Of a stretch of 64,000 bases of DNA, positions 10,842 to 34,397 are shown one piece after another. A program made the translations under genes and the position numbers. The notes under the pieces are model-generated. The model worked only from the letters and a program-made list of their open reading frames with translations. It did not search any database and had not been told where the DNA came from. Position 1 is the first letter of the stretch, and each line of letters opens with the position of its first letter. The stretch covers positions 1 through 64,000 of the forward strand of contig NW_020847638.1 in the NCBI RefSeq assembly GCF_003704095.1, written 5' to 3'. The stretch comes from Pocillopora damicornis. Taxonomy: Eukaryota.

Positions 10842-10852
10842 GGGGAATCCCC
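10842..10852 (+). promoter_or_regulatory. NF-kB (kB) site GGGGAATCCCC in the putative promoter of MATH-less TRAF-like gene 3
   Basis: Near-palindromic p50-type site inside ttaggggaatcccctaa, ~110 bp upstream of splice donor cag|gtacgt at 10962/10963. An identical site lies at the homologous position of gene 4. Confidence 0.75.
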
Positions 10853-12572
10853 TAATTATCTATTCGCCGCAAGGGACTACGGGAAACAAGAACCGCTGCA
10901 TCATAATATTCAAAGATAACAAAATTTTGTAGAGGTTTATACTGTAATTCACATCTAACCAGGTACGTAATTTCTTTTATGAAGCTTGATTTCCCAACTA
11001 TGCCTTTTGAAACCATTCTTTAAGGGTATTAAGTGTTCATCCTCAACTCTTGATCGAAAACGAAACTGTATCTAATGCAATTTTTTTTTTTGTGTGCTCT
11101 CAAAGACGAGAAATAAGTACTGTCGTTATTTTTTATTGACAAGTCTTTTATTAGAGACAGAAACATGCGTCGATTTTAGCGTCCGTAATGACATTTTCAG
11201 ACCCCAGCACCACTGAGAGTTTCTAAAAGAAAGTGAGAAACAAAACAAAACAAAAACGAAAGCTGATTTTTGTGGCGATACATAACGACGGGGACAAAAG
11301 GCGTGGCGGCCATTTTGGCTTTGCATAGTGTGCTTTTGGTTTTCAAATCTAAACAGGATCATATACTTGATACTTCAGCTTTCCTTAACCATTATAAATG
11401 TATTTTTTATTTCAAGAGATTCTATTACCTCCTGGAGTCTTTCTGTTCGTTAGTTAGGTACTTGAAAACGTTGTCGTTGTTTCAGGGAAGGCGAAATAAA
11501 TGATGCTTATCTAAGCATTTCTTTGTATCCAAAATGGCGTTGCGTCCTTTATAGTTACAGTTCAGTGCTTTGATCATTCGTGACCTAATCTGAAGTTTGT
11601 GTTTCCATGTATATATGCAGTTGATATTGATGTGAAATCGGTTCTGTGCTTGATAAGCCGTCAGTTTTGTAATTGTTTAACGAGATAAACATCGAGGAGA
11701 AATCTTACCAGCAATTAGCGGGTTGTAGATTAGAAGGCCATGACAACAGAATGGACTTGCGAAAACCCTAAAAACGATGATGTAAATCACTTGAATTATA
11801 TTTCTTAGTTATACATTACTTTCAAAAGTTTTATTCTTTGATCGATGTGACAGTTTCTTGGTATGATTAAACTTACTTAAGTAATACTGCTTAAACTGGA
11901 AAGTACCAGTATGTATATTGATAAGTAAGTTTAGTTTTATCTTGTAATAAAAGGTACTTTATGGATATTTTATGCACCAGGAATCGATAAAGAACTAAAT
12001 CTCGCTAGGAAAATAAAATAACGAAGTGATTCGATATTTTTGTACAACATGAGGATCTTGCAATTTAGTAAGATCCTGCTAGAATCTTAATCTTTCAGTT
12101 CATGTAATTGCAAACCTTTGAGCAATTAGTTATCTCCAGGCGATCATATTTATTTTTACCGTATCTGGCGTTATTAATGTGAAAGAAAGAGTACAAATTT
12201 ATTGAATCAATATTTGCAACCTTGATGTTTTTGGTAATATTAAATGACTTTGTTTAAACACTCTTGACCATCCTCCAGTTATTGTACTGAAAGTTGATAG
12301 TGTGTAATATGTTTTGATATTAGATGAAGGTTTTAAGTCTTAGTTAACCCTAGAATTTGTCTTGTGCTTGTGATACTATCATTTTAGTTACAGCTGGTCT
12401 TTCTGCTCTGGTTACTTCTCTGTGATAATTTTACCAAAGCCTCAAAATTCACACGCAATCAAGTTGCTCCAAATAATTTTACTGAAGGTGAATAAGTGTA
12501 ATAGCAACTTTGAGCAAACGTCCCTTCCCTTTTTATTTCAGGTTAACAGACAGAGTTATTTAATATTAAAAG

Positions 12573-15500
12573 ATGTCTGGATACAGAATTCCATTTTCTG
12601 CAAATATTGATGATAAGTTTAATTGTAAATCATGTGGTCATTTATTGAGAGATGCTGTACAAACACTTTGTGGCCACCTTTATTGTGAAAACTGCTTGCT
12701 GAAGATGTTAGAACATGAATGGTAAGTGTGTATTTATCAACATAAGCCAAATAAATTTCAAAAGCTTGGTTAGTGTCATAAGATTTTCTTCAAAACAGTT
12801 ATGTAATACTTAAAATGAAATTATGGGCAGGGATCACACCAAATACATACCTCTGCATTGCTGTTTTGCAACAAGTAATGAATGTTTAATTAAACCTTAT
12901 ATGTGGCTATGATTTTGAAGACATTACTACTGCTTTCAGGAATTTAATTAATCCACAATGCAGAATGACATCATCACTTTTTAACTGAACCAAATTCTAA
13001 AAGTGCATCAAACCTTAAGTAACTTGATCACACGACTTGCTTTTAGGTGTCAAAGTAATATATATGTTATTTATTGTGTGATACATTAATAAAATGCAAA
13101 CATTAATTTTTGTGAATAATGAATACTGTATTACTGTTAATAATTAATAATTTTTTAAAAATTAATTTGTCAACTTAAAGTTGTTAAAGAAAGAATAAAA
13201 GTAATGAAGTTCACACAGTGCAAAGGAAGTTACTTTCTAGAGGGTCTCTCGGGTACCCCAATCTGGCCATGCAACAAACTCAGTGTCCCAGGCCCTGAAT
13301 TTAAACTACTATTGGTATCCATTGGCTTTGCAGTTTATATTTTTCTTTATTCCAATTAGTGCTCAAACCATTTGCAACTGTGTATATATAAACATAATTT
13401 TGATTTAAGTTGTTGTTGTTAGTTGATTATATGTTCTAACAGATTTACTCCTGGCCTTTTCTTTAGGGTGTTAAAGGAAGTCAAATGTTTAGACCAGAAT
13501 TGTAGCAGTCAAATTGGAAATGGAGGGGTAAATGTTTTGTAATTCTTTTTTACTTAAGCATTATTTTAAACTTATATATTAATGCATTTTTCCTAGTTAA
13601 TAAGAGTACATACAATTTCATCTTCAGTTAGGAAAAATAACTATCATACAAATGTTGATGGACATCTAAATTCATTATCAAGTGACTTAAGAGATATGGA
13701 ATTTTATTTTTAATGGATTGAATGAAATGAGACAATAGGTAAAATTTTAAGATACGAGTTTTAGGCAGGCATGTTGTGGAAATGATGATGTGCATAATCA
13801 CTATAGCCTTTAGTGGGAAGAAGCATTTCTGATTACCAGTTCTGATATTTGAAATATAATGAAATAAACAAACTCCCTTAAAATTAAGTGTACAAGTAAG
13901 AGGGAGAATTCTGTGTAATAAAATTTGTGGACTGCATTATAAATTTAATTATATGCATGGGATTTTAGGTCCTCCTAAGATATCTATTGAAATTTTGTAG
14001 TCATATTTGTAAAAGTTTAAAAAATTTGTGTGCTGTAAGACTTGTGATTTGTAAGAATTATTTGGTGGTCAAGTTGAACTGGTCTCTGCAACAAAGTGAA
14101 GGAGTTAGTAGTTGGTCTGTCATGGCAAAAGTCCTAAAATATCTCAGGCAAGGTTTATCTCAAGAAATTAAAATATCATGTATCCTTGAACAAGTACCTG
14201 TGCTCTAATTGGTACCCTCCCCCAAATAAGTGCAAAATTCCCCTTGGCCATACTACCAAACAAATTTCCCTCTTCAATAAGTACCCCACTCCTCCCTCAA
14301 TTCTTTTAAGTAGCAGGGATACAAGGAAAACCTGTTTCTAATTAATTGCCACTTTTTTTACAACTTTTTGAGCTTCAACCATAGTGGAGTCAATTTCCAC
14401 TGCAGTTATTTTTTTCTCCATGTGCATGCAGAATTCCTCAATAAGCATTATCTTTTCTTTATTTTTTGTCAAATTGCTGTGCTAACTTAACAAGCACCCC
14501 TTTGATTAAGCACCTTCTTCCTATACAATGGCCTGAGTTTTCTTGCTCACTATAAGTTGCAGAGATTATTAATAGTGATTGAAACTTAAGTTCCAGATCT
14601 GTTCCCCTCAATTTTTTCATGCTCTTTTATTTTCCTCATCTGATTTCAAAATGCATTTTTACATTTATTGATGTGTAACCAATGTGCCTTAGTGACGTTA
14701 AAAAAAAATGACTTCCAGTTTGTTGTAAAAACAATTTTTGGTCACACATTTATTTCTAACCATGTTAAATTAAATGATACATACTAATTCATGTAATGAT
14801 CCTCATCTTAAGTAACTCAGGTGGAAATAGATGTATTTCTGACAGGATTCTTATGGGTTCAGTATGGTTAACAGTCCTTTACTAATTAAAGAAATCAAAG
14901 TCGGATCAAAGGAACAAAATATGTATGTATGTTGGTAATGTAATTACATATTAAGAGGTAACATAGGAACTAACATACATTGTGTGTATCTACAGAAGTG
15001 AGTTCATAATGTTGATAATGTAACCTAAATTAAAAAATTGTCCTCACAGGGATCACAATGAATACATAATTTCTTGTATTCCAAAATGTCTGCATACTTA
15101 AATTACAAGTGCCATCTCATTCTTTTAAGGGAGATTATGTTTGCTTGTGCAACTTCATTTGTTAATGTACTACTTGGTTGGTTCAGCTGGAAAATTGAGA
15201 ATATTATGCAAGTTCACATTTTTTTTTTTCTATGGACAGTATTTTCCTGACAATCACACGAGAAGAGAAATACTGCAAATGACTACACCATGCTTGAATA
15301 AAGATACTGGATGTGATTGGTTTGGTGAAGTCAGATCTGCGGAAGTAAGAGTAAAAAGATTACTTTTAATACCTTGTAGCTGTAAATGATAATTATAAAT
15401 CAAGTTGCTTGATATGTTCCCTGGTTGCACGTGTTTGACTTTTCTATTTCTTGAAGTCAAATAACATTATGGTTTAAAATGTAATAATTAATCACCAAAT

Positions 15501-18500
15501 TTGCATGTCTTGGGGGCCTATTAAAGAAAAGAAGGATAAATGAAAGTTTGATGGAAGATCTGAAGGAAAGGTGGGTGGGACTCATTGTATAATGGTATTT
15601 ACATCTATAACACATCAAATTGTGTTTATTTATTAAACATTTCACAGATAATGTATTTTCTTATAGTACACGCAGTTTGTTATCTTAAAGACATCACTTT
15701 TAGCCCCATGCTGGTTCTGGAAGTACCCTTGCGAAATGGCTTTTGGAATTGCTAGGAATTCCTAGGATTTTCCTATTTTCCAGTAAATTCGGACTGGGAA
15801 TTCCTAGGAATTCCTAGGAATTCCCAACCATAACAACTCTGGTTCTGAAAACCTAGAATTTCCTAGAAATTCCCAGAAATTCCCAGAAATTCCAAGTTTA
15901 TAGCCAACAGGACTTGGAATTCCTAGGAATTCCTAGGAATTCCAACTCAGAGAACCAATGACTTTCCCTGAAAAGCTGTAAATCTAAAAAATTCCTTGGA
16001 ATTTCTGGGAATTTCTGGGAATTTTTAGGAATGTTTAAGAATTATTGGGAATTTTAAGCAAAAATTTGAGGCTAATGATATAAAATAAATACTTTAAATT
16101 AAAAAAACCCAGCTAAAATTCAAGTATTCAATGAAATTTATTTAGAAGCTTAATTAAGGCTTACATGTAAAATATTTTTTATTCATTATTAACATCAATG
16201 TGTGGTAATATTAGGATGGAATTTGATTTTTCTTTTCTTGAAAACTTCATATGGATTAATCCTCAATTACAGCTATTCATATAAAATAGTTCTAATCAAT
16301 CATTAAATTTGGTTTGACACAAATTGTGAATAAAATCTGTTGATTCTTTTCCATAAAATACAATATCTTAAATTATATTTGAAAACCAAGCACTCTTAGG
16401 AGTGAAGGGGTTAATTACAGACAAATAAAATTTATCGTTTTATTAAAATCTTGTAGTAACTGTAACAATAAATTAGAATGAAGTTATCCTAAACTGCAAA
16501 CTTAGCTGCTGCTTGTATTTTTTTTCTGGGCTCACAATGAGTTGGCCTTGAAACAGGTTGTCTACAAGAAGCTTGACCATTTTGTATCTGGGTTCCATGA
16601 CATCTGAATTTGAAAAAAAATAAGATATTTAAATATATATATTTAAAGCTCAGACCAGGCCTTTAAGATGGCTATGAGGAAAAGGGCATTCATTGGATTC
16701 TCAAATTGAAAAATCTCTGTTATATTGAGTGACTTTTATATTGGAGTTAGTACATCTCTCTCATAGATTTTACTAAGTGACCGATTCGATTCTCAGAATT
16801 ATTCTAGTTTCAATTGCGCCGAGCGTTATGTAAGCTTAATTCAACCCGCTACATCTATTCTTTATAAGATTTTGATTACGCAACGAATATCGCAATTTTT
16901 TACTCACCACAAACTTTCAAAATCGTAGCTTTACAGATGGCCACTCGACCCTTGTTTGTACTAGTCAAGATGTCAACTGTTGTCCCTTCTTTTAACTCCA
17001 CGGCGCCAACGACTTTCTTTTCTTTTACAACACTCACGCTGTTCTCGTTTTCCCATTGAACCACAATAAAAGCTATCTTTAGAAATGTTATATTAAGCAA
17101 AACAGTTGAGAAAAACGATCAACCGATGAAAAGTACATTCAAAGATGAGCGCCAAATGGAGTCTTCTTTGTTTCTGATCACGGGCATGATCACGTGGATC
17201 TTTTAGGGACTTGTCATTGGCTAGCAAAGTGAATCCGCTGGCTTGCCGATTGCAGTGTTAAGAGAAGCGCACAACTTTATTTTGACTTCTCCGACCGGTT
17301 CTCTGTTTCTAGACGATGGATACCTTGGTGATATAAATAATGATGTGGGTTCACTCTATGTAGAAGTAATCGACAAGTATCGATCGTATTACAAATGCAC
17401 GATTTGTGGCCGAACGTTGTTGAGGAAAAAAAGACTCGAAACTCACTTGAGTTGTGTTCATGGCAAAGGTGAGAANNNNNNNNNNNNNNNNNNNNNNNNN
17501 NNNNNNNNNNNNNNNNNNNNNNNNNNNNNNNNNNNNNNNNNNNNNNNNNNNNNNNNNNNNNNNNNNNNNNNNNNNTTGGGAATTTTTGAGAATTACTAGG
17601 AATTCCTAGGAATTCCCAGAAAACTGGGAATTCAGTTTGTAAGGGTCTTTTGCATAATTGGGAATTTTTGAGAATTCCTGGGAATTCCCAGAAAACTGGA
17701 AATTCAGTTCGTAAGGGTAGTTCAGATTCAAGTCACTTGGGCTTGGAGGATCAGGCTGAATTAGGCCTGATCAGATTGGGTCACTTTATACTTTTAACTC
17801 TGTCAACTAAGACTGAGGCAACTCAGAGATCATTTGGGTCCTGAATTTATATATTTTTTTGCATGAAATTTATGTTACATTTAAATTTTGGTGTTATTTG
17901 ATCTGTTCATAGGACCATTACAAAGAGTGTGAGTGGAGGCCAGTGACATGTGTTAATTCTGGCTGCAATAAAGACGTACCACTTAATACATCAGCCAAGC
18001 ACCAAGAGGAGGAATGTCCTTTTAGAGATGTGGTTTGCAACTTCTGCAATAAGGCAATAAAGTGGGCTGATCAAGCAGTAAGTATATACTGGAAGCTTCA
18101 TTTAGAATCAAGTAATTAGTAAGTCAGAGCCAATGATAAAATTTAAATATATTCAAGAAACCTACTTGTTTGGGGAACCTTTACTCATGATGATGCCCAG
18201 AGGCAACAACATGTTATTTAGCCTCTGCATCAATTAAGACTGAAAGGGCCTTCATTGTTTTATAATGCAGATCTAGTCCAAAAGAGTATAACCTAAGAGA
18301 AACGTACTAGAGGAAAATAGAACATAATTTATACATCCAATAGGATACTTAGTAAACTTATTGACTGGCTTCCATAACATGTAGCTTTCACTGTCATTGA
18401 GTCATTGTATTTTTTATACTATTAACATTCATTACGTTATAGAACCATAGTGAAAGCTGTGAAAATCTACATGTTACTTGTGGAAATTGTGGGAAAGAGA

Positions 18501-21500
18501 ACATTCAACTGTGCGAGGTACAGACTTCAACCACATGAATGCAATTATTATATTAGTTGCATATTACTATTGCTATATTTTTTATGAGGGGGCGGGGGAG
18601 TTAATTATCACAATTTTCATTAACATCTATTCACCAAAGTGGAGGTGGGTATAAAAGGTGGATATTTACCTAACTGCGAAGCGGCAAGTAAATTATACAA
18701 TGCTTTCAATGAGATTTGAACCCAGGGGGGTGGGCAAAAATAACGCAACGAACTTCGACGAATTTCTTGGCTTTTGGAGGAAATTTCGCTGCGAAAGAAC
18801 TTTCCGCGAACGAAATTACGAACGATATTTCGCTGTGGACGCTAGTGAGTTGCGAACTCAAGAGGGAAAGTTCGCTCTTCTCGAAAGTTCGGTGCGAAAT
18901 TTCGAGAGAAAATTCACTCTACTTATTACAGCGAAGTGTAGTCTATGTATTGTTGTAATGCACTGCAGAAAAACTAGAAATCAGTCTGATCCACTCAAGT
19001 AACTATTCTATCGCTCCTTGCTGTTGAAACCTCAACGAATGTTTGATTGTTGATGTGATCCGAACAGCCAGGTGTTCGAGTCTAAATAGAAACGACCACG
19101 CAAACACTCCAGGCAAGTGGAACTTGAACTGGACGCCATTTGTTGTGATTAACCTTTTCATATAACGACACATGAAATTCCCAATTTTTAGGCGAGACTC
19201 CACGCGAGGAAGCATGACGTGCTGTTCGCAACCATGGCAACACATGGTATACCAATACTTCGATTCTCTCTCTCATTCATTGATCTCGTAGCACTCTGGT
19301 AGTTATTATGCCAAAAATATCAAGCTATACTAGAACTCGAATCGAGCTCCTGTATAGCCAGGGCTTCCATCCAGCTGGAATATTTAAAACCTTGAAAAGC
19401 GAAGGGTTACAAGTGAGCCTTTCAGGTATCACTCGCTTAATCAAGAAGCTGCGTCTTACTAGCTCCGTAGCAAATTTACCTCGCTCGAGGAGACCGAAAA
19501 AGCTGTCTATGGAAGCAAGAGCTTTCATAGACCAACAGATGCGTAGGAATGACGAGACGAAGAGCGCGAAGATTCGAAAGAAGCTGGCAAAACGAGGAAT
19601 TCTCGAAAGTTCGTCCACGGTGCGAAGATCGCGAAAGCAGCATAGCTGAACTCTCTTGCAAAGTAAGTTTTCGAATCTTCTTTCGCACTCTCTAAACTTC
19701 CCGCGTTAATGACGGGATTCAAATTTGTAAATGTAATCTGCGAAAACTAAAGGAACACTCAGATACCATATCTGCCAAAAACGTGTACTGTCCGTATAAG
19801 TCAAAAGCGATGCGGAAAATTTACTATTACAGCAGCATCTGATGGCATTGATCAGAACAGGCTTATGTTTTGTCTTTTCTGGTTTAAAACAAAACATAAA
19901 GTCTTTATTCTTGGTAAGTTAAGCGAGTATTTCTCATCGTTTGTATTCGTGACATAACTCCAGCCGAGGAACTGTCGTGTATTTCGTGAACGTTATATGA
20001 TGGAAAGATCGCGTAAATCGCATGGCGAACAGTTGAGTCTATACAGCGCGAAATTTCGACTAGTAGGCAGTAAGCCGACGCTTTTTATGGCGAAATTTCG
20101 CTAAACTTTCGTTTCGAAGCGAAAATTCGACGAAATGGCGCTCTTTGTTCAACGGAAAATTCACTCAAAAAGCCTCGAATTGTCATTCGAACTTTCGCAC
20201 GAAATTTAGTTCAAAGTTCGCGATAACAAAAAAGGAAATTCGCGCATTTCGCTTGCGTTACTTTTGCGCAAAACTGTACAAGGAAAGGACAGGGGAGGAG
20301 GCAAAGATGGCCTTCCGAATAAACGATTGCGAACTTGTAATGTTAATTTCCACTAGTAAGACCCCTGTGATGAAAATGTGAAAAAGTAAGAAAGAAAATA
20401 CGATTGCACTTCCTGGCTAGATGAAAACAAATTATAATTTCATCATGCAAGGTAGGAATCTTAGCAGGAGATTCTCAGCCGCTATTTAGTTTTTATTTAA
20501 AACTGTAAGAACTGTTAATGGGAGCAAACATGCTTTTTGCCTTTTGTGATAGCCGAAAAGAATAGTTAAGCACATTGGATGACTGATATTTTTCGTGGCA
20601 ACAATTACGAAGCCTTTAATTGTTACCTGTCTGCTCATTACAGTTGAAGAGGCATCAAGATGCAAAGGACGGTGATTGCACACAAAAGGAGTGTCCGTAC
20701 AGAGACTACGGATGTGAGCATTGTGTAAGTTTGATAGTAATCAAATTTAGGTAAAAGCGTTTCGAGATTGAGTATCAATTTTTGAAGTTATTCTAACCGC
20801 CAGTATAATGAGGACCATATCGGAAATCAACTTGAGTGCATTTGATCTCATGCCTCAGTAAAGCGCTGGAATAGTATGTCCCCTTCGCACTTGTTTACGG
20901 TTTTTCATGCTTAATGCTTTAGTAGCATCCCAAAGAATTCCGGCTGCAAATTCAGTTCTGCTAAGGAACATTTACCCATTGTTTACTTCAGCCGTTAGCA
21001 CTGCTCAAAGAAAACTTGCCCTCAACTCTCCTTATCTCTTCAGACGCCTCCATGTCATCCGCGTCACTGTGAAGCAGTGGTATAACTGAAAAATTGCCCC
21101 CTGAGACACTCATTTTAGGGCACAACTAAGCACTGCCAAACAAGAGACTTCACTTTTCAAGTCACCCACGCCTGAAAACGTAGTGTTTTAGAAGCCTTTT
21201 CTTGACATGTCTCCTTGCTAAAAGCTGGTTTGTCAGTTTTTGGACAAGGGGACTAGGCGATGTTTATCATGATGCAGTCTGTTAATTAATTTTAAAATTG
21301 TTCCAGGAGAAGATGGATCCCAAAGAGTTCAGGGCCCATTTGGATGCTGATGTGGTCCCACACTCATTGCTTGTGTTGCCACATCAGAGAGGTATGAATG
21401 ACCATCGCATGGAAGCCAACGCGGCTGAGTTAAGTGCTTTAAAAGAAACTCTCGCTGCAGATGAAAAGGTCATTGCAGAACATGAGTGGGCACTCCAAAG

Positions 21501-21564
21501 CCACTACCAAGAAATCCGTCTTCTGAAAGAAGATATGGAGAAATTGAAAAACTCTCGCGGGTAA
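12573..21564 (+). CDS. TRAF-derived gene 3: RING + TRAF zinc fingers + short coiled coil, no MATH domain (~297 aa)
   Basis: Exons 12573-12721 (MSGYR...CKSCGHLLRDAVQTLCGHLYCENC), 13467-13527, 15240-15344 (YFPDNHTRREI), 17913-18077, 18443-18517, 20644-20724, 21307-21564. All are GT-AG, total 894 nt, open frame. Exon sizes and phases mirror the TRAF gene. A putative non-coding exon 1 ends at 10962. Confidence 0.88.
15726..17717. mobile_element. EnSpm/CACTA-like (CMC) DNA transposon derivative in an intron of gene 3
   Basis: TA|CCCTTGCGAA...TTCGTAAGGG|TA short TIRs with a 2-bp TA duplication. Arrays of GGAATTCCTA-type decamers at both ends (15740-16060, 17576-17705). Divergent internal coding fragments: C2H2 finger CTICGRTLLRKKRLETHLSCVH on + (~17390-17468) and an exon on - (16908-17100). 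Gap at 17476-17575. Confidence 0.7.
18723..20276 (+). mobile_element. Tc1/mariner-like transposon, internally deleted
   Basis: Imperfect TIRs (cag...tgggcaaaaataacgcaa / ttgcgttacttttgcgcaaaactg|ta), cgaaatttcg-rich subterminal regions, and a truncated transposase ORF inside. Confidence 0.7.
19308..19649 (+). pseudogene. Truncated Tc1/Tc3-type transposase (N-terminal bipartite HTH DNA-binding region only)
   Basis: MPKIS...RIELLYSQG...VSLSGITRLIKK...PRSRRPKKLS (GRPR-like linker)...SSSTVRR; ends before any DDE domain. Confidence 0.75.
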
Positions 21565-24500
21565 GGGGACGGTTGCCCGCTGCATAGATAGTACATTGAT
21601 TAGCATATATACATTAATCACAGATAAGAATGGAATTTCTTTAGTAGTTAGGAATGTGAAATTGTACTGTTATGGAGTTATATGTGGTAGAAGATAATAT
21701 TCGAAATGTGGACTATTTTTTAGAGATGTGACAGTGATGCAGTTAAACGGTGATAAATTTAGCACTTAGTTTTATAATGAGTAGTTTTTACCATCATCAC
21801 TGTATGATACAAAATAGGTTACTAGAAATTAGTCTGGGTATTAGTCTGTGGTCGAGTTTTTAAAGGGTTTGCACAGTACACGTAGTTTTCGTTCACGTAG
21901 TTTTCGTACAAGTTTAGATAATTTTGACTGGTTTACTAAATCTCTTCTCGTTTTTGTCTATTTTTTGCAAATTTAGGGCAGCTTTTTCAACTTTAGACAG
22001 TTAAAAATGCTGTGGATCATCATTTTTTCATCGTCTAGAACTGAAGTAGATTTTTACTTGACTGTGTATATAGTTTCTTACCAGCGGCGCTTGAACGAGC
22101 GTTTAGAAGCAATTAAAGGGTAATTGGTCATTTCGCTTACGGATCGTTTGGCTAACGACGGTTGGCTGACGTCTTAGGTCATTCCGCCAACGTCCCAGGT
22201 AGTTTTGCTAACGTCTCACTGGTCGTTTCGCCAACGTTTCACAAAACCATTAGTAGTTCTATCGGCAGAACTTGATCGACTTCCTATCGAATCATAGGCA
22301 AAATGACAGTAAACCAATCAAACATGCGTTGACTCACATGGTTCTTCCACCCGCCATCCAGTCTACGTTAGACTTTACTCCATAAGTGGACAACTGTGAC
22401 AAGGCTTAATCCATAGCAAAAGAATATAGTATCTAAAATGGTAGCAGTTTTTAAAAGAAGTTAAAGCAGTGATATCATCTAGGGTTAGTTATCAGACATA
22501 TCAACTCTGCTATGGTCTCCCGCGTGAGCCTGCGAATACGTTCTTCAGCTTTGTCTTCGTTGTCCATTCCTAATTCAGTTTGTGTCAGACTTATATATAG
22601 GATTCCATAGTCGATTGTGGTTCAGTGTTTGGACCCAATTTTTTTAGTTTTACATGTCTCGCGATTTTTCTCCTTCCTATGTCATTGCTTTCACTTAGGG
22701 ATAAATTTCATGTGCTTGCCTCCTGAAGTAGCCAGACTACGAGCAGGAGCAAAAAAGAAGCGAATATTGAAAATTGTGGTTCACCGCGCGGAACTGTGGG
22801 AGTGAGTTGCGGCGCACTAACTACAAGTACTATTTTCTTTTTGCTGATTTCGTTCGGACTCGGGCGACAGACTTCGCCGAAAAGGAGGGACTGCTCGTAC
22901 CCTACAAAAAGTAATTTATTCTCGTATGCCTCTCAAAAAGGCTTTCTTCACTTTTAACCATATTTATGTGTTCTATCAAACCCGTGATATGTAATTAAGT
23001 CAGTTGATAGGAGTTGCGAAATTGGTTCCACACACTGTGCTAAAATCGACTGTCATGAGCACATAAATTTGCTATTCGTGTTTCTGTGTAATGCGAATAG
23101 TTTATTAATGATTCCATATCTGTTTTTCTTGTTGGGCCTTTGAGGTAAGTTTATTCTTTCACCCTGGTCGGACTTGATTTCGCATGCAAAAAGTTTGAAA
23201 TAAGCATATTGCAGCTTGAATGTGATATACTTATGGTTAAGTATCTGGATGAAAAAGACTGTTTGAGTAATATGGAAAATTGCACCATATGCCATACGGT
23301 GACAAGGTTAATTTAATGTTGTTTCATGTTATTTCAATGTGTTGTGTAACATATTTCTGATGTAGAATTTTCATTGGTCGAAGTAGTTGAAAGTCCATGC
23401 AGTTTGCAACGGATTGTTCTAACAAACGACGGCTCTTTAGCCACAGGTTAGTTGTTTATCATATAAAGATTTTTTGAAATGACATTAACCTTCATAATAA
23501 TAGGCCTGAAAGGATGGCACTTTTTCCTATAAAGACTTGATAATTTCATTCCATTCGAACAAAGTGGCTCGCACTTTTCATGAGGTAAACGTGAAACTGT
23601 GTCACGCCCTTGGGAACTATTTTTAGAACTTTGTAGGGGTTCCTCTGTCAGAGTACCATCCCCACTCAGGAATGTCTGTGGGTGCCAGCACATTGTAAGG
23701 GAAACTTTATCAATTGCTGGGAATTAACCTGCGTCGGACTAATATTCGATCCAGGGGATAAGCAACGTTCGTGGTCACTTTATTTTAGCAGAACCAAGTT
23801 AAGCACCCTTTGTGTAAGCCATTTGCAATTGGTCAATAACCCGAGAGTCTTCATGGAAAAAGAGTCACATAATGGCTCAGTATGTTACAGGTTTTCAAGT
23901 TATCATTTTGCTTGTCATTTCGGTTTGGTTTGCCTTTTAAACATATATAGCTCTGAAGGAGTAATTTTAAAAGTTTTTATTTTTTAATTTTTGATGTTCG
24001 TATGTTTTAGTGCTAGAAAGCAATATAATTATTTTGCTGTGACACTCAGGTAATGCTATAATTTCGTAAATGTTTAAATGAATAATAAGCACTTTTTAAA
24101 AGTAATTTCTAACAACTCAGGTGTTGTTGCTTAGGGTTTTTTACTCGAGGGTTTTTTACCCGTGATACGAATATTCTCTTAAAAATTCAGCCGACTGCTG
24201 GTTGTCAGTCACACGGCTGGTTTTCGTCAGTATCCATTATCACTTCAGATGGACGATGTTTTTTGCTCAGTTTAGTTATGGACCATTTGATTTTTGATGG
24301 ATGGATTGGCACTTCTCGCGAAGTTATTTTATTTCCTCTTTTTTTTTTCTTTCTTTGTTTCGTTTTCCATCTGAGGGCTCGGAGTCTTCTTTGACGATTT
24401 TCAAGTTATATACATTCATTTGATACGGCATGTTTATTTTGAGTTTATTTTTAAAGTTTATTCAGTTTTTTCTTTCTTTCCTCACCCATTCCTACCATTA

Positions 24501-24784
24501 TCAAGAGTTTAATGGTCCGTTACCTTATTCGAAAAGGCGCAAGTATACTCTAGCACAGTGCGTCATGTGTTTCTTTCGAGTATTTCATATCCGGAAAAAT
24601 TTTACTTGTTTGTCAGACAATTATGACAATGCCTGCTTTTCCTACCATTTGGCATTTTCTGTTAGTTTCCTCTCTGGTCACATAGGATCAGTCTTAAAAG
24701 CCATCATTAATGTCTTTTTCTTTTTTTCGTGTCTTTTTTTAAGTAGTTACATGTTATTTTCGAGAACAGCATAATTACCAACAT

Positions 24785-24950
24785 AATGACCAGCTCCCGG
24801 TTGGCATGTTAGCTCAGTTGGTAGAGCGCTGCACCGGTATCGCAAAGGTCATGGGTTCAAATCCCGTACGGGCCCGAATTTTTTTTTGAGGCCTTATTTC
24901 ACTACTGGTTAAGTAGTGTTCATAACTGCGAAGATCGCTTCCATATTCGT
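24785..24950 (+). repeat. tRNA-derived SINE-like repeat (tRNA-like head 24803-24875, nominal anticodon GGT)
   Basis: A box TAGCTCAGTTGG and B box GGTTCAAATCC, imperfect acceptor and anticodon stems, C at position 33, then a T tract and a non-tRNA tail. More likely a SINE or pseudo-tRNA than a functional tRNA. Confidence 0.75.
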
Positions 24951-25335
24951 AAATTAGCGTTAATTTGATTTTGTTAATTAGCCTACACAAAAAACATCGT
25001 TTTTTTTTCTTAAGGTTCAGTTAAAGAAGTTGAACTGTGTCATTATTTTGTTTTTTGCCTTGTATGAGAAATCCTACACTTTCAATGGGATTCTCTTCTT
25101 AATGTTGTCTAAAGTAAAGAAACAGCCTTATTATCATTTCCATTTGGGCAGTTAGGCAGTCATGCCAAATAGAGCGAGTGAGTTATTTAGTTAGTTTTAA
25201 TGTCTAGTCATTACTTAGTCATTAATTATTACATTAGTCATATATGTGACTCTAAAAGTTGGCTCAAAACAATTTGTTTTTTTCCTTTTGTGCTAATATA
25301 TTGACGGATCAATACTTAGTACTTTTGTTCTTGCT

Positions 25336-25548
25336 TTAACCTTTTAACTCCCAAGATCTCTTTTAGTAATTCTCCTTACTGTCTGCCATACAATTCTTAT
25401 GATGTCAATTTGGAGAATTTGGTATTGGATTAGCTTATAATTCTTGAGTTGATATTTTCCTTTATCCTCATCACTTCTATGCTTGACATTGTATTGATAT
25501 TGTAAGGAGAAATTCTCTCTTGGTCACTCATGAGAGGTAAAGGGTTAA
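25336..25548. mobile_element. TTAA-flanked MITE (piggyBac-like termini)
   Basis: ttaa|ccttttaactc...gaggtaaaggg|ttaa, ~205 bp, non-coding. Degenerate related ends appear near 16400 and 29290. Confidence 0.65.
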
Positions 25549-26429
25549 TTATTGATCATTCCAAAATTACAGTTGAGTCCTTTCTCTTGCACAGTATGTC
25601 ACCATGGCACTACAACCTTGATTTTTGCTTAATGTGCCAGAAATTCCTACTGTTAAAGTTTGATAACCTGCAGTCATGGTGTTAAGATTAATCTTTTCCC
25701 AAAGCTCTCAAAATATATTTTACAGCTTCAGAGCTTGGATTAATTAATGGTAGTAAATGTGCGCATTATTTTTATGGGAATAAAAGAATAAAGGTGACTG
25801 TGTCGATCGATCAGAAAATTAGTATAAAAAGAGAGGAGGAAATAACAAAACCCTTTTGAGCTACCTTAGGTAATATAATTTGCAAACAATTATGTAATAC
25901 AGATAAAGGTGATTAGTGGCTATTAAAAGTTTCGTTTGACTCAAGTGTTCTGTATTATTTGATAAGACTGGAATTTCGCTGTCAGTGGGGACCTTTACGT
26001 AACTGCACGTCACAAACCACTTTCTTTGCCTTGTATTCACTTTGATTGGGTTGGTCTTGAACAATGCGTTGCTCAAATTGTAACTGGGTGGTTAAGACTG
26101 GTTTTGCATCTCTGAGAAGAGGCAAAAAGTATCGAAATCTTTATTTAGCGATTTTACAAATGAATTAAATGGTTAGGTAATAAGTTATAAGTTGCATTCA
26201 AAACCAATTTGTGAGTGGATGGTTCCAACTGAACTATGCTAACATGTTACGTTCACAGAAAATCTTTGCCTCGTACTCTGTTGATCACACAGGTGCGCGG
26301 ATCTCCAATCCGCCACATCGAGAGAAGAGTATAATTCAGAAACTATGACCTATCTCCGCCCCTGTTTGGATGGTTTTGAAACTTTACCTCTCATAACGGT
26401 TTGCTCGGTGTAAATATTTTAATGGTCTT

Positions 26430-27080
26430 GTGTATTCAATATTGTTTGATGACACCGGGATTTTCAGAAAGATTGAGTGCCACGAGGCTGCCGTCATTAC
26501 TTTTTTGTTTACTTTGATTGCCTGAATTTTAATTTATAACTAAAAATGACACTGCTAGTGTTCAATAACATGGCATTTTTGAAAGTAGAAAAATTGGCTG
26601 AAATGTGGCTTTTGCATATAGCTGGCTAAGTTCGAATTCTAAGATTTTTTTAAAGAAATGTTGGGTCAGTCTCATCGGATGCGCTTTACTCAAATCTTTG
26701 ACCCTAGCTAACGACATCATGACTGTTTGCTGATGTGAAGTAGCAAGACGTGCTCTATTATTGTGGTTTACGGCTCATAAAAATTATCCAGTCGTAACGC
26801 GGGAAATGTCGTAAAAAAAAAGAGACATGCCTTCGTGTGTTGAATTGGTGAGCTTCATAAATATGTGGCAGCTTAGCACAGTTCACTTAGTGAACATTAA
26901 CAAATTGGAAGTTGCTTTATTTTTCCTTTACTACAAAAAAAAAATTACACTGAGCTTTCATCACCTTCAGGGTAAAAACACGAACCTCCATATTAGTTAG
27001 CAATTCAAATTTTTTCCTCACGATCATCTACAATATTTTCGCATGCGGTTCAAACTTAAAGTTTCCGGCTCAAAGTTGCC
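26430..27080 (+). repeat. Non-coding segment duplicated at ~35605-36250 (flank of the tandem duplication unit)
   Basis: Collinear shared blocks: ttgtttgatgacac, ccacgaggctgc.gtcatt.cttttttgt, gacactgct.gtgtt, aatctttgacc, catgact.tttgct. Confidence 0.8.
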
Positions 27081-27273
27081 ATGTACTAACGTTAGACCGC
27101 TTGTTGACGAGAACAATCCATGATTGCTTTAAAATGGCTTTCTTCAAAGTAAAACTGTCGAAATTCGAACAGAAATTGTCTCACAAAATGAAAACAACTT
27201 TGACGTTGAGAGACACGTGAAAAGACAACCTCGTTCCTGGCCTCTCTCGCTTGATTGGCCAGGCCCACCTGAA

Positions 27274-27284
27274 GGGGAATCCCC
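27274..27284 (+). promoter_or_regulatory. NF-kB (kB) site GGGGAATCCCC in the putative promoter of MATH-less TRAF-like gene 4
   Basis: aggggaatcccctaatt, identical over 17 nt to the gene 3 site. It lies ~80 bp upstream of donor cag|gtatgt at 27366/27367, with a reverse CCAAT (gattgg) ~20 bp upstream. Confidence 0.75.
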
Positions 27285-28062
27285 TAATTCGAGTTTAGAG
27301 TATGATTAATCACGAGACACGATCTTGTTGGTAGACGTTTTGGCCTCTGTAGGCGGATGTTTACAGGTATGTCTATTTTCAAGTTTATCTCATGATAAGC
27401 CCATTTAGACGTCTTTTAAAATATCAAGTGTTCATTCCTATTTTATGCTCGAAATAGGGTCGAAAAGAAGCCAACATTCGATGCAACATTGCATCGCATT
27501 GTGTTCGCATAGAACGTTAAGTGTTCAATGTAGATCTTTCCAGTTCGCAGTGAAGCGTGTATTTTAAATGAGTTTGCCCGCCGATAAAGAGGTGATAGTC
27601 GCTAAGTGTTTTCAAGTATGCGAGAACCTGTCGCTGTAATGATCTACTCTTCCATTAGACGGCATTTAAAGATGCCGACAAGCTGTGAAAATAATCCGTT
27701 GTTTCGGTAAACTGTTCATCTTGCGTAACGCACGATCGCCGGCCATGCAAGCTGAAATTGCCTTACAAGATGCTGAATGTTTTCAAAAAAATGCTAAAAA
27801 GTTCTAGATCAGAATAAGAGAACTGGTTCGTTAGTTTTCATTCTAACCATTGTAAGTGAATATTTTCAATAACATCAAAGGATTCTTCAAACGTCGCATG
27901 GTTTGTTCTGTTAATTGTTTTTTCTACGCATGAGCTGAAAAAGTGCCTATCGAAGCATATTCATTTTTTACTTCTGAAATGGCCTCTGAAGTCTTATGAA
28001 GAGCATTCCGCTGTTTATGTGAAGGACTTGAATCCCCGATTAGACTCGTGATTAATTTTGCT

Positions 28063-28113
28063 ACACTAATGGTGGATTTCATACTTTAACAGAATGAAAT
28101 CCACCATTAGTGT
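28063..28113. repeat. Perfect 20-bp inverted repeat with an 11-nt spacer
   Basis: acactaatggtggatttcat-actttaacaga-atgaaatccaccattagtgt. Confidence 0.9.
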
Positions 28114-28183
28114 TATTATAAACACTCGTGTAGTTAACCTCGAGTGATTCTTTGTTTTCTCTTTAGATTAACAACTAGTAAGA

Positions 28184-31100
28184 ATGCCTGGGTTTAGACT
28201 GGTTGGCTTTGCACAAATTCCTGCTAAATACCTTTGTAAGTCATGTGGTCTGCTATTGCGAGAAGCAGTACAAACCTGTTGCGGTCACCATTATTGCAAA
28301 ACCTGCCTATTGGAGATTTTAACTCATGAACCGTGAGTAGATTGCAATTTCAATTTTTCTTTAATTTGCAATAGACTTAACAAATCTGGGGAGGTCTTAT
28401 GATGTGATTTGCCGAAGAAGATGCTTTAAACATCTCCTAATTATAATGCATGTCATATGTTTTCACTGACCACCTCATGGGTGCACAATTTAAATATTAA
28501 GCCTTCACCACTATACATTACAATAAATGAGGGAATCATGACGAAACTACAAATGGTTACTGCAGCAATTAGATATACATCTTTAACAGCATGAATTGGT
28601 TCCATGCATTGCTGAAACAACACCTGCAAGCAGTTGAATCCATGATTCCCTGTCGACAGTGATCACACTTAATTATCTAAGTACATGCAATGTGATAAAT
28701 CTGAATTCTTTAATGTCTATACTCTTCAGGTCTTCAGGGTCTGTGAAGTGTTTAGATGAGAGTTGCAACAGACCATTGGGGAAAAACTCGGTAAGTATGT
28801 CTATTTATTAAATTTGGAGTGTTGGAATGTAATATGTTTATTTTTTTGGTAAATTTTCATGTTCTATTTAATTTTTTATTTAGAAAGTTTGCATCAGGAG
28901 TGATAAGTTGGGTGAATGACTGTAGCAAGTAGCATATGTGCACATTATACAATGCTGGGTAATTTACACATTTTCTCATCAAACGTGACCAGATCTCGTT
29001 TACTATGTAATGAGAATACTGTACAAAAATTTTAAGATACAAATGTACATTTAGCTGTGTTGGTGCAGCTACATTGTTTTTAAACCTTTTCACTTTCAGA
29101 GCTGGTTAAGAATTAATTTCCCCTTTCAATATATCAATACACTGCATGGCAAGCAGATCAAAGATGGTAATCAGAGTATAAAGAGAGAGATATAAATTAA
29201 TGGATATTATTTTATTTAACATTACATTATTGATTATTACCTTACATTATTGATTATAGAAAGTAAAGAGAAAAATTGAGATCTCAGGAGTGATTGTGGG
29301 TTTGGAATAAAAGATTGTCTTGTTGTGCAGTTACAGATCCTTAATTATTGAATGAGCATCTATTATTGGTAATGTTGATAAATGTTGGAAAACTTCAATG
29401 ACTTTCTTGTTTAACTCTTTTCAATTGACAGTACTTTGATGACAACAGTTTTGGAAGAGAGATACTGAACATTGTAACTCTGTGTTTGTACAAAGATGCT
29501 GGATGTCAATGGATGGATGCTGTCAAAAATGCAGAAGTGAGTACAAAGATAACTTTAATACTAGATAAATTAATTAATAAAATGTCTTCAAAAAGTTGAT
29601 TAAAAGACTGTTTAAAATGTTTCTTCTTTATTGGTTTGTCAAATAACTCTGATTGAAACATGAATTTGATTTACCTCATTTCCCCTTTCAAAACAATTAA
29701 GATGGATGTTTTGGAAATCTGGAGATGTAAGATCTTAAACCTCCAACAATATTAAAAAAAAATAAACCTTAAATTAACTGAAAACCTGTATAGTCACTAT
29801 TTGCAATCTGTTCTTTGAATTGATTAGGGGTGTTTTGATTAAATGAAATATGGTATGCCATGGATAAAAGGTTTTTATTTTGAAGTATGGTCATTTGAAT
29901 GCCAAGATAAAAGTTAAAATGATAGATAACCCTATAGTTGCTCTGTTTATTTATAACCTTGGAATTAATATTGTAAAACTATAGACTGAGAGACTTATTT
30001 TGCTTAATATTTGGTAATCATTTAAATTGCACATTGTGAAGTCCTATTGGCATGCATTGATTGTTTCCTAACATTATAGGAAATTAAGATATGTTTGATT
30101 TCTGTATACATTAAAAAAATATGGTGAGTGCATGAGTTTCAGCATTTTTCAGGCTGCTTAACAATTTAACAGCCATGACAAGTATAAAAAAAGATTTTGG
30201 CTCTTAAATGTACAGTGTAGCATGCTGTAATTAGCAGTCATGTAGCAAGATCATGTAAAATATTGATTATTGTTGCGTTTATATGGTTTGAAGTAAAAGT
30301 GAAATAAACATTTGGAATGGATAAAATGTTGAGTAATATAATTATTACTCATTGGGAGTGTACATAAGCACAAATTGTTCTCTTCCTTTTTCTTGGTTTC
30401 TGAATCAATAATTTAGGTGATCATTTCCTGATATTATGTCACTAATGTTAAAAACAGTTAAGCCTACATAGGAGTCCTGAACATTGTTAAAGTTAGGCCT
30501 AGCTTTTAACTACTATATACACATGTATGTCTGTGATAAATTTACATAACATTGTGTAAGAAGTATACATTGTAAAATGTTTTTAACATAACTAAAATAA
30601 TGATAAGTACTTTTGATTCTCATATTACTTTCATTGGTTTGTAGCATCATTACCGAGAGTGCAATTTTAAGCCAACTATGTGCACCAATGCTGGCTGTAA
30701 TCAAAACATACCATTGTGTGCATTAGCCCAACATCAGGAGAAGGAATGTCCCTTTAGAAATGTGGTGTGCCACTCATGCAATTCAGCAATCAAATGGACT
30801 GAGCACGCAGTAAGTTGCCAACAGTACATTCTGGAAACTTGAATGTACATGTAATTAAGACTTTAAAAGTATTAGCTTATTCTTATGAGATATACTTGCA
30901 GGTTTGAATCCTTCTTCGATACCTTTATTGGCTTAAAGGGCAGTGAGGCTTGCAGATTATTGAACAGATAAGTTTTTCCAGGAAAAGGATCCTCAGAAAG
31001 TTTGGTTGATCAATNNNNNNNNNNNNNNNNNNNNNNNNNNNNNNNNNNNNNNNNNNNNNNNNNNNNNNNNNNNNNNNNNNNNNNNNNNNNNNNNNNNNNN

Positions 31101-33656
31101 NNNNNNNNNNNNNNAGTTGAATAAGCATTTAGATGCAAAGGATGGAGATTGTACACAGATGGAGTGTCCATACAGAGAGTACGGATGTGACCATCCTGTA
31201 AGTTTAATTGTTAGTGTAATTTGTAAGTTAAACAAGAATCAAGTTTATCTTGGGGCATGATGGGTTTGAATATTGCAAAAAGTAATAAAGCCATAACAGC
31301 CAATGAGTACTTGTACCTGCAAGTAAAATATCAAAGGAACTAATGAGAACTCAAAGTGATTAAATGTAAAATGGTGTAAAAATAGTCAGTGCTCCTATAG
31401 CAACCATTCTTTGGGATGTCAAAAAAAAAACTCAACAACTGATTTGTAGAGTTAAGCGAGGGAAAGTTCCCTTGACTAATCTCTTACTGTAGTGATGTTC
31501 AATTGTTTCAATTGATGGGTTAATTTTTTTTTACTCCCATACAAATTCTTGAAATTTTTGACTGTGCTTTAACCTGGAAAATGAAATCTTTAACTATCAA
31601 CGCAAGATTAAATTTCAAAGAAATTTTCTCTTTCTTCAATTCTCTCCTTTTTTTTCCGATGGCGAAAGTAACACCGGATTGGACCAGTGTTGCCTTAAGG
31701 TTACCCTCTTCACCAATCAAATAAAAATTTGAAACTTATTACGACTTGGTTATCGCTCTTTAAATCACTCTGGTTTTTGATTTTTTGAGTTCTCAACTTT
31801 TGTTGTGATTGACTGTTGTGGTTTGGTCTTACAAGTTAGATTGGCTATACATACGAAGTGAAAAGGTACTCTTTATTATTTTCAAAGACTACTCTTTCGT
31901 AAAGAATTTATCTTTTAAAAGCCGCATTTTTCTTGGTTTGTGCATCTGGAAGAAACAAAATTAGTTAGCTAACAAAAGTTGCCAACAACATTAGGAAAGC
32001 TTGGTGAAAGGGAATTTCCCTTTACAATCTCTTTTACAAGAGGATTTCTTCACATAAATTAGACTTAAAAAAAACTTTTTCTTGGTAAAATTTTCATTAA
32101 AAGTTCTCCGAGTTCAAAATTGGCATGTCAACTTTTGGACAAGAGAACTGATTGAGGGAAAACTTGTCATTTGCACCGCCGTAAAAATTCGGCTTAACAA
32201 ATGTTATAATAATGTTCGGATATAGCAAGCGCTATCATTTTTTGAAAGATCCATTTCTAGGTTTACTACGTACATAAGAAAAGCTTTTCTTATGTACGTA
32301 GTAAACCTTGAAGTGGATAACTCACCAAAATGGGTTCTTTTCAACATAGTAAGCGGTCAGATAGTAAGCGATGCGCTGTGAAGTAAGGTGGGGTATTTTA
32401 ATTGAGAATTTGAATGTATTTTTTATTCCTTAGAGCGGTCGTAAATATTCCCATACAAATTCTCATAATTTTGCATGACTCTTATTTCGCAAGATGATCA
32501 TCTCACAGCTGGAGCTTGGGCCATCTGTGGTCCATCGCTGCTAGCTCATCATGGCGATCTCCGGTCATCGCAGTGAAGCAAGCCTCAGAAAATACATCGG
32601 CCGCCCTTCGAGTGAAAAAATAAGAGCTTCCTCTGATATCCTTCCTGATGCGTTGAGTGGAAGGCCGCATCGGTCACTGCAGCCGAGTTTTACGGCGCTG
32701 TCATCACGAGCGATCTTCATGTTCTGGTGAATTCGGCTTTCGTTCATTCATAAAACAGTCGCCTTCCGCAGTTTGTGTTCCTCTTGTCATATGGAAAAAA
32801 TGCGTGTTTTTACGAGCACAATTCGGCTGAAGATCATTGAACATTTCACTTTCAGATTCTGTATTAGAGACTAAAAAAACTTTAGGCAAAAGTATTAAAT
32901 TCGACCTGCCGAACTAAGTTTGTAAACTATCGCAGAAGGTGAACTTTGATGGTTTTGACATTTTTGACAGCTTTAGTCTTGTACAGCCTATCAGATTATT
33001 TGAACCGTTCCAACAGGGATTCTGATTGGCTTATTGTAGCGTGCTTATGAGAGTATATAGCGAGCTGACGACACTGTCGTCCGCTTTGGAAATAAAGTTC
33101 GTTTTGAAAATTGAAAGTAATGCTTGGGGAATTTAACGGATTCTCTATTATAAAACAAACGAAGAAGCCTTGACTGTGCTCTGTTTTGTTGTAAAGCACT
33201 TACGAAGCAGCTAGATTCTCGTGTTTCCCCCTACACTACTTTCGTGCTCTAACCGCTTGCTGCGTGCTTTCTAACAGAACAGAGGGCAGTCAAAGCTTCT
33301 CGATTTGTTAATTAGGGCAACTTGAAAATATTTTTGACTAGCTCTGTTTATTTCTCCTTTAATCAACTCAGGAGAGGATGAATTCCGTAGAGCTCAAGAC
33401 TCATCTAGACGCCTGTGTTGTAACACATCAGTTGATTTTCTTGAGACAGCACAAAAGATCAAGCACTAATCAACATCCATGCGATGTTGCCGACACTGAG
33501 GCCGAGTTAGGGGCCTTGAAACGAAGTTTTATCTCAGCTGAAACATGTCTTTTAAGACACGATTGGGCGCTCAGTGACCACTACCAACTTATTACGCACT
33601 TGAGAAAAGATGTGGAGGAATTGAAAGATCTCAGGTTAAAGAAAGATGGTCAGTGA
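28184..33656 (+). CDS. TRAF-derived gene 4: RING + TRAF zinc fingers + short coiled coil, no MATH domain (paralog of gene 3)
   Basis: Exons 28184-28332 (MPGFR...CKSCGLLLREAVQTCCGHHYCKTC), 28730-28790, 29432-29536, 30645-30809, [~75-nt exon presumed in gap 31015-31114], 31117-31197, 33372-33656. Exon lengths 149/61/105/165/81 equal those of gene 3. Confidence 0.87.
32259..32308. repeat. Perfect 50-bp spacerless palindrome
   Basis: AGGTTTACTACGTACATAAGAAAAG|CTTTTCTTATGTACGTAGTAAACCT, with imperfect pairing continuing into the flanks (atcca...tggat). Confidence 0.95.
33150..33312. repeat. Unclassified fold-back interspersed repeat; related copy in opposite orientation at ~56580-56690
   Basis: gaagccttgactgtgctctgtt...aacagaacagagggcagtcaaagcttc internal inverted repeat; 56593-56665 is the approximate reverse complement of 33215-33290. 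Confidence 0.6.

Positions 33657-34362: not shown

Positions 34363-34397
<35 letters not shown>

Follow-up and report, generated by a model that had tools for sequence, protein, structure and literature searches.

MATH-less TRAF6-like tandem paralogs with a conserved upstream kB site at a TRAF locus of the coral Pocillopora damicornis

TRAF1, an NF-kB-induced TRAF, has no RING, TRAFD1/FLN29 and TRAF7 carry TRAF-type zinc fingers without a MATH domain, and in TRAF7 WD40 repeats stand where MATH would be. TRAF6 contacts the ubiquitin-conjugating enzyme (E2) Ubc13 through residues I72 and L74, and the substitutions I72D/L74R or L74H abolish or weaken Ubc13 binding (PMC5702613, PMC5634496). The engineered fragment T6RZC, composed of the RING, zinc fingers (ZnF) and coiled coil (CC) of TRAF6, is a processive ubiquitin ligase (E3) in vitro (PMC5634496). 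TRAF dimers with one E2 site are still active, a TRAF that does not bind E2 can provide zinc finger 1 (ZF1) and the linker helix, and such dimers have been demonstrated for TRAF5-TRAF6 and for complementing TRAF6 mutants (PMC5702613). We analyzed a 64,000-nt stretch of Pocillopora damicornis DNA (contig NW_020847638.1, positions 1 to 64,000; hereafter the window), in which an earlier note, made from the sequence letters, had marked two TRAF-like genes, gene 3 and gene 4. The analysis showed that genes 3 and 4 form an old tandem pair of paralogs in a stony-coral TRAF6-like family, that they are transcribed, correctly spliced and under purifying selection, and that their products end without the TRAF-C/MATH domain found at the C-terminus of a canonical TRAF.

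In the products of the two genes, a RING is followed by five TRAF-type zinc fingers and a single helix about 50 residues long. They match TRAF6 in the LR[DE]AVQT.CGH..C RING core, in having the FPDN linker helix and in how the TRAF zinc fingers are spaced, and their exon plan equals that of a neighbouring TRAF; unlike TRAF6, they have no TRAF-C/MATH, a much shorter coiled coil, Ser/Gly in place of I72/L74, and C-x4-C rather than C-x2-D as the last RING pair. Like TRAF1, they are TRAF paralogs minus one module, with a kB site and a proposed role as regulatory subunits, whereas the coral genes lost MATH and kept the RING, and their induction and heteromers are proposals. T6RZC has the same RING, zinc fingers and coiled coil and likewise no TRAF-C, but it is engineered and carries the Ubc13 interface and a full coiled coil, while the coral proteins are natural, with a shorter helix and an altered E2 interface. 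TRAF5 and other TRAFs with weak or no E2 binding, which serve as RING heterodimer partners of TRAF6 (PMC5702613; 7l3l), resemble the coral proteins in keeping the linker helix and ZF1 while perhaps not holding E2, and PDB 7l3l chain A was also among the sequence matches; such TRAF5-type partners, however, keep MATH and dock on receptors, and heterodimerisation of the coral proteins is proposed. The coral proteins also share TRAF-type zinc fingers without MATH with TRAF7 and FLN29. The FLN29 zinc finger 2d9k gave a weak match (E 3e-6); FLN29 has no RING, whereas the coral proteins simply end after the helix.

The search for MATH was performed with the Pfam TRAF/meprin model PF21355, a hidden Markov model (HMM), in six frames of the whole genome, a 234-Mb assembly of 4393 contigs, at E<=10. 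The model matched 43 places in the genome, of which one is on the contig, at 6826-7182 in gene 2, and the pair stands beside a canonical MATH-bearing TRAF, as had been proposed. A tblastn search with the coiled coil plus MATH exon of gene 2 gave no match in 21.5-40 kb, and the claim of the earlier note that no MATH follows gene 3 or gene 4 was borne out by both searches, which were empty apart from gene 2. MATH was also not found within 10 kb downstream of the orthologs in P. meandrina, in Desmophyllum pertusum and at a further coral locus (L008), nor in Pfam scans of the gene 3 and gene 4 products (P0047 and P0048) and of further family products (P0018, P0049 and P0025/28/37).

The full coding structure of gene 3 was read from the Logan transcript contig L005, and its 3' part from contigs of four polyA/cDNA RNA runs of three studies, placed on 17576-23575 (Table 1). 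Translation runs from the ATG at 12573 to the TAA at 21562-21564 and gives a product of 297 aa. All junctions are GT..AG, with the coding junctions in phase 0 except RING1/RING2 (phase 2); the joint 18517>20644 can also be placed as 18515(+2)>20642(+2). The assembly gap at 17476-17575 lies within intron 3, and 15344 and 17913 are cleanly joined in the transcript. The last exon codes for the histidines of zinc finger 5, the helix of about 50 residues and the H-E-W-A-L motif, and is followed by an unspliced 3' untranslated region (3'UTR) of at least 1335 nt beyond the stop (one contig per run over 21307-22899, 4/4 runs).

The structure of gene 4 comes from one Logan transcript contig, L006, with an ATG at 28184, a TGA at 33654-33656 and a product of 304 aa. 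Positions 500-568 of L006 fall on no read letters and sit between the parts matching 30809 and 31117; because L006 thus has 69 in-frame nt that are missing from the window, one zinc-finger exon of gene 4 is assigned to the assembly gap. The 3'UTR of gene 4 is likewise unspliced, for at least 733 nt past the stop. Public transcript contigs matched the window exons at 97-100% identity and, together with a P. meandrina ortholog in an equal gene order, assign the window to the genus Pocillopora. The gene models predicted from the letters stood up well against these transcripts: the stop at 21564 is passed into the 3'UTR by L005 and by RNA contigs of all four runs, L006 is colinear through the stop at 33656 to 34389, and both genes have the exon architecture of a TRAF, with 105- and 165-nt exons in phases equal to those of gene 2 (2726-2830 and 3668-3832).

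Some further features of the gene 3 transcription unit were observed. RNA contigs from window position 22871 to about 24836 overlap the gene 3 3'UTR by about 29 nt and carry on over single-copy DNA; they are broken only at a 35-nt repeat (22865-22899) and end at a highly repeated element of about 64 nt near 24777. They represent either an extension that brings the gene 3 3'UTR to at least 3.3 kb or an unspliced transcript in its own right, on either strand, and the sole AATAAA/ATTAAA between the stop and 24900 is at 22112. Many single-base differences among the RNA runs were seen in the 3'UTR (21438-23358), and the window differs from L005 by seven amino acids, with a ratio of nonsynonymous to synonymous substitution rates (dN/dS) of 0.18; both reflect species or allele variation inside the genus Pocillopora. 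Intron 5 holds an open reading frame (ORF) at 19284-19646 with weak HTH_32 and paired-box-like matches (E 6e-4) and low RNA coverage from one run, probably a transposase remnant. Just past the gap in intron 3, at 17576-17775, the summed RNA depth reaches 340-1050 over many contigs, with one joint skipping 32 nt; this part, in which GGGAATTCCC stands at 17680, has the look of a repeat element that is transcribed.

We further explored how widely the short C-terminus occurs by searching a profile of the gene 3 and gene 4 last exons against 1.84 billion representative proteins. Ten coral-type matches and two unrelated coiled-coil proteins were obtained. Nine of the ten coral matches are short ORF calls that begin at the last-exon Met and end at about the same place, and the tenth is a 259-aa protein with the same C-terminus. 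Full-length relatives were added by cluster look-up and word searches: Stylophora pistillata XP_022802128.1 ('TRAF6-B-like', 303 aa), P. meandrina CAH3037684.1, an Oculina patagonica 'TRAF6-like' protein of 296 aa, a Desmophyllum fragment, and proteins of 299-314 aa from other coral transcriptomes. The family, at a length of about 296-314 aa, therefore extends over the genera Pocillopora, Stylophora, Oculina and Desmophyllum, a breadth that is a lower bound given the few protein-search matches; the coral locus L008 stops short of the RING exon and promoter.

In a six-sequence alignment (A3), 28/28 zinc ligands were invariant, namely eight of the RING and 20 of the five zinc fingers, as was H-x-W-A-L-x3-Y near the C-terminus, and every member ends about 20 residues past H[DE]WAL. 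The intact RING and zinc-finger Cys/His residues reported earlier were thus found again, with the refinement that the last RING pair is C-x4-C and not the canonical C-x2-C/D, and the C-terminal motif described as shared by genes 3 and 4 is present in their alignment (A2). The P. meandrina entry CAH3037684.1 (L004) is a 326-aa model with 45 non-homologous residues where its relatives have the zinc-finger 4 exon, and is probably a mis-built gene model. A lone RING exon resembling the family (MPGY..., C-N-F-C-G, ...QTSCGHHYC) lies on genome contig C824 at 5203-5376 on the minus strand (locus L024). Over the 5 kb that follow on its strand, as far as the start of the contig, no further TRAF exon was seen, and C824 had no MATH match; the exon could belong to another relative or be a fragment.

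In Stylophora, the ortholog of gene 3 aligns with it at about 72% over introns and flanks and has a canonical TRAF upstream, as in the window. Because the intergenic DNA also aligns with Stylophora as far as the region upstream of gene 4, the alignment suggests that the duplication predates the split between Pocillopora and Stylophora. By the NG86 method, dN/dS was 0.29 between gene 3 and its Stylophora ortholog and 0.29 between gene 3 and gene 4; by part, the RING and zinc fingers gave 0.17-0.29 and the last exon 0.26-0.28. The dN/dS check asked for in the earlier note therefore returned a value of about 0.3, not near 1. Between Pocillopora and Stylophora, protein identity was 72% for gene 3 versus 92% for the coiled coil plus MATH exon of gene 2, and genes 3 and 4 are thus constrained yet evolve faster than gene 2.

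Two donor-like sites required attention, a GGTAAGG at 21560 that overlaps the gene 3 stop and a GTCAGT that overlaps the gene 4 stop (~33648). The former is unused in the contigs of 4/4 RNA runs and the latter in L006; splicing from ~21560 or ~33648 into MATH exons had been raised as a check, and the contigs run straight through both places. The idea that these donor-like GTs mark a lost intron before MATH was dropped, as they are in different phases and unused in the RNA contigs. Genes 3 and 4 could in principle be decaying truncated duplicates, or a MATH exon could be hidden in a gap or confined to a minor isoform, given that donor-like GTAAGG and GTCAGT overlap the stops, that contigs cannot exclude rare isoforms and that the region has gaps. 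We consider these explanations highly improbable: dN/dS is about 0.3, the 28 ligands are invariant in at least four genera, the same short C-terminus recurs in many independent transcript and genome contigs, the two donor-like sites differ in phase, the MATH HMM has no match on the contig beyond gene 2 or downstream in the orthologous loci, and both gaps are accounted for by transcripts. Pseudogene and artefact readings are essentially excluded, and genes 3 and 4 are not pseudogenes.

The domain content of the products was examined by Pfam, structure prediction and comparison with solved structures. Pfam zf-TRAF (PF02176) scored 37.4 bits on P0047 and 36.1 bits on P0048 (cut-off 27), and zf-C3HC4 scored 22.3 bits on P0047 (cut-off 21). 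An AlphaFold2 model built on a shallow alignment had a mean confidence score (pLDDT) of 75.6, with 80-93 over the RING and zinc fingers and about 80-86 in the RING, and displayed a single helix at residues 247-296. The best solved relatives were the TRAF6 RING-ZF fragments 5vo0 and 3hcs (E 2e-20, over RING-ZF1-3), followed by TRAF5 (E 3e-12) and TRAF2 (E 2e-9). By these best PDB matches and by the NCBI names, the products can be called TRAF6-like. The MATH of gene 2, in contrast, is TRAF2/3-like, and so genes 3 and 4 are no recent duplicate of gene 2 with its MATH deleted. The closest paralog outside the window (contig C4161) was tried as a TRAF6 reference and rejected, its MATH not being TRAF6-like.

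We next compared the E2-binding surface. The C-P-I-C-L of TRAF6 aligns to C-K/V-S-C-G in the family (CKSCG or CVSCG), with Ser and Gly invariant (3hcs, 5vo0; A3), so that the Ubc13-contact residues I72/L74 of TRAF6 are replaced by Ser/Gly in every member and the Ubc13 surface of TRAF6 is not retained. The FPDN..RE linker helix and, for the most part, the basic ZF1 residue are retained (A3). The other TRAF RING exons of the genome vary at the I72/L74 positions, and one is exactly CPICL. Ser/Gly at these positions count against E3 activity with Ubc13. This bears on a reading in which the coral proteins are active, self-oligomerising E3s that signal without a receptor as autonomous amplifiers, in an NF-kB-driven positive feed-forward. 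Their domain composition does equal that of T6RZC, whose E3 activity in vitro is processive (PMC5634496), no zinc ligand has been lost, and the long C-terminal helix could oligomerise; yet the equivalents of I72 and L74, where TRAF6 mutations disrupt Ubc13 binding, are Ser/Gly throughout the family, and the helix is much shorter than the gene 2 coiled coil. Such autonomous E3s are in our judgement unlikely.

We then turned to the DNA upstream of the genes. The 11-mer GGGGAATCCCC is the H2K/major histocompatibility complex (MHC) kB site, a standard NF-kB probe in electrophoretic mobility shift assays that has been crystallised with p52, and cnidarian NF-kB is p50-like. It occurs exactly twice in the 64 kb, at 10842 and 27274, a count reached by 0/100 shuffles. 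The two copies lie upstream of genes 3 and 4 within 17 identical nt, with nothing else alignable in the surrounding 900 nt; we put a chance match of a 17-mer at roughly 5e-5. The comparison with Stylophora covers gene 3, as the upstream alignment ends at L003:24103, short of the gene 4 promoter. In the 2.8-kb Pocillopora/Stylophora alignment of the gene 3 upstream region and intron 1 (71.7% identity), the longest perfect run is 26 nt from 10840 and holds the kB site. The P. meandrina locus L004 has the site at 9088. Across the 23.5 kb of the Desmophyllum locus, a single match to the kB consensus was seen, the 10-bp core GGGAATCCCC; it precedes the ATG exon by 1.39 kb and a donor-like GT by about 88 nt, a layout as in genes 3 and 4. 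The earlier note had described an identical site upstream of homologous non-coding first exons; the site held, and proved to be 17 nt long and conserved, while the first exons stay putative, with the donor context of the putative gene 3 exon 1 kept in Stylophora. The kB site is thus conserved upstream of a putative first exon, and NF-kB may use it.

The same evidence bears on whether the motif is an NF-kB switch at all. Genes 3 and 4 might encode real MATH-less TRAF-like proteins that are expressed constitutively and serve outside TNFR/TLR signalling, in development or general ubiquitin biology. They are indeed expressed in ordinary polyA libraries without known challenge, and the conserved block holds TAATT and further bases. 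On the other hand, the exact MHC-type 11-mer has been kept in two paralogs whose flanks do not align, it falls within the longest perfect Stylophora block, and the Desmophyllum locus has its 10-bp core as the sole kB-consensus match in 23.5 kb, at the corresponding upstream position. We regard such a constitutive role as rather improbable.

The reading we prefer, and to which we give a little better than an even chance, is that this expressed MATH-less family provides partners that do not recruit E2 and that tune TRAF6 assemblies under NF-kB feedback. Without MATH, the proteins would not be recruited in the canonical way to receptor tails and would work in the cytoplasm, independently of receptors, as subunits of signalling assemblies of TRAFs and lysine-63-linked (K63) ubiquitin. 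NF-kB would drive the transcription of genes 3 and 4 in a feedback loop, the genes being likely NF-kB targets because of the upstream kB site. The proteins would join TRAF6-type RING dimers or coiled-coil oligomers without recruiting an E2 themselves, a role proposed because Ser/Gly stand at the Ubc13 interface while the linker helix and ZF1 are kept. As partners, they may tune the amount of active TRAF6 lattice, and we lean slightly towards dampening. The interpretation in the earlier note is in this way supported in part: the intact, expressed and maintained MATH-less pair and its kB site stand, while inducibility, ligase activity and hetero-oligomerisation with gene 2 are proposals.

Several points weigh against this proposal of E2-non-recruiting partners under NF-kB feedback. 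The TRAF6-like label stands on best hits and not on a tree. Gene 2 has a TRAF2/3-like MATH, whereas the pair is TRAF6-like, and the coiled coil of gene 2 gives only a weak alignment with those of the pair. Ser/Gly at the E2 interface are no proof of lost E2 binding, as other E2s might bind, and about half of the other TRAF RING exons in the genome are also without Ile there. Upstream, the conserved 17-mer contains TAATT as well and could be read by another factor, and the kB site may not be promoter-proximal. The RNA libraries, finally, are ordinary polyA libraries, unchallenged or of unstated condition.

The genes of the locus lie in the order gene 1 fragment, gene 2 (the canonical TRAF), gene 3 and gene 4 on the plus strand (Table 1), and the P. 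meandrina ortholog locus has an identical gene order. Gene 1 is a further TRAF that begins beyond the contig start; its pieces at 423-605 and 1050-1808 (plus strand) comprise a zinc-finger exon of the 165-nt type and a long coiled-coil exon that enters the gap at 1810-1909, with its MATH out of view. Past this gap, the read letters also lack the RING exons of gene 2. Downstream of gene 4 lie two single-exon ORFs of rhodopsin-family G-protein-coupled receptors (GPCRs), at 40086-41048 (plus strand) and 41578-43035 (minus strand), with 7tm_1 matches at E 4e-20 and 2e-22, and the P. meandrina ortholog likewise has a GPCR ORF pair next in line.

Table 1 Coordinates of the TRAF genes, kB elements and assembly gap discussed in the text (window positions)
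Feature	Position	Strand	Basis
Neighbouring canonical TRAF (gene 2)	2726..7209	+	TRAF2/3-like MATH at 6826-7182
17-nt element with MHC-type kB site GGGGAATCCCC, upstream of gene 3	10841..10857	+	Alignment with paralog and Stylophora
Gene 3 putative non-coding exon 1	10858..10961	+	Sequence only; donor-like CAG/GTACGT at 10961/10962
Gene 3 exon with ATG 12573 and RING ligands 1-6, including CKSCG	12542..12721	+	L005; splice sites
Gene 3 61-nt exon, last RING ligand pair (C-x4-C)	13467..13527	+	L005; matches gene 4 in tblastx
Gene 3 105-nt exon, linker helix and zinc finger 1	15240..15344	+	L005; RNA contig end before 17913 reads the exon end
Gene 3 165-nt exon, zinc fingers 2-3	17913..18077	+	RNA joints; L005
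Gene 3 75-nt exon, first part of zinc finger 4	18443..18517	+	Joints 18077>18443 and 18517>20644 in 4 runs
Gene 3 81-nt exon, rest of zinc finger 4 and beginning of zinc finger 5	20644..20724	+	Joint 20724>21307, 4 runs
Gene 3 last exon, 85 codons, stop TAA 21562-21564	21307..22899 (at least)	+	Single spanning contigs, 4 runs
Identical 17-nt kB element upstream of gene 4	27273..27289	+	Paralog comparison
Gene 4 exon with ATG 28184 and RING ligands 1-6	28167..28332	+	L006
Gene 4 61-nt exon, last RING ligand pair	28730..28790	+	L006
Gene 4 105-nt exon	29432..29536	+	L006
Gene 4 165-nt exon	30645..30809	+	L006
Assembly gap hiding a 69-nt in-frame zinc-finger exon of gene 4	31015..31114	.	L006
Gene 4 81-nt exon	31117..31197	+	L006
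Gene 4 last exon, 94 codons, H-D-W-A-L, stop TGA 33654-33656	33372..34389 (at least)	+	L006, colinear

Members of the family are already annotated as 'TRAF6-like' or 'TRAF6-B-like' in Stylophora, Oculina and P. meandrina, and the pair is not unique to this locus. Domain-loss variants in the expanded TRAF repertoires of invertebrates are not surprising in themselves, and our literature searches turned up no description of a MATH-less TRAF subfamily from corals. What the analysis adds is the conservation of a MATH-less family, its altered E2 interface and the conserved kB site. Because the annotations say just 'TRAF6-like' and one P. meandrina model is mis-built, coral transcriptome counts of 'TRAF6' may be reading MATH-less genes.

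Corals have large TNFR, TLR and TRAF repertoires whose restraint and amplification are barely understood and bear on responses to disease and bleaching. The family, in which only the receptor-docking module has been lost and which has a textbook kB site, is a cloneable candidate regulator and a natural experiment on how a TRAF made of RING, zinc fingers and coiled coil works when TRAF-C is missing, and genes 3 and 4 are plausible feedback regulators of coral innate immunity. A bolder version of the proposal, which we hold only tentatively and think unlikely to be right in full, is that they encode an NF-kB-induced, receptor-blind TRAF6-like subunit, the inverse of TRAF1, that evolved in stony corals and has been kept there since before the split between Pocillopora and Stylophora. 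If this is true, a subunit that sits in TRAF6 RING dimers or lattices without Ubc13 would set the gain of signalling from TLR and TNFR to NF-kB, and such a feedback device would be undescribed in any animal.

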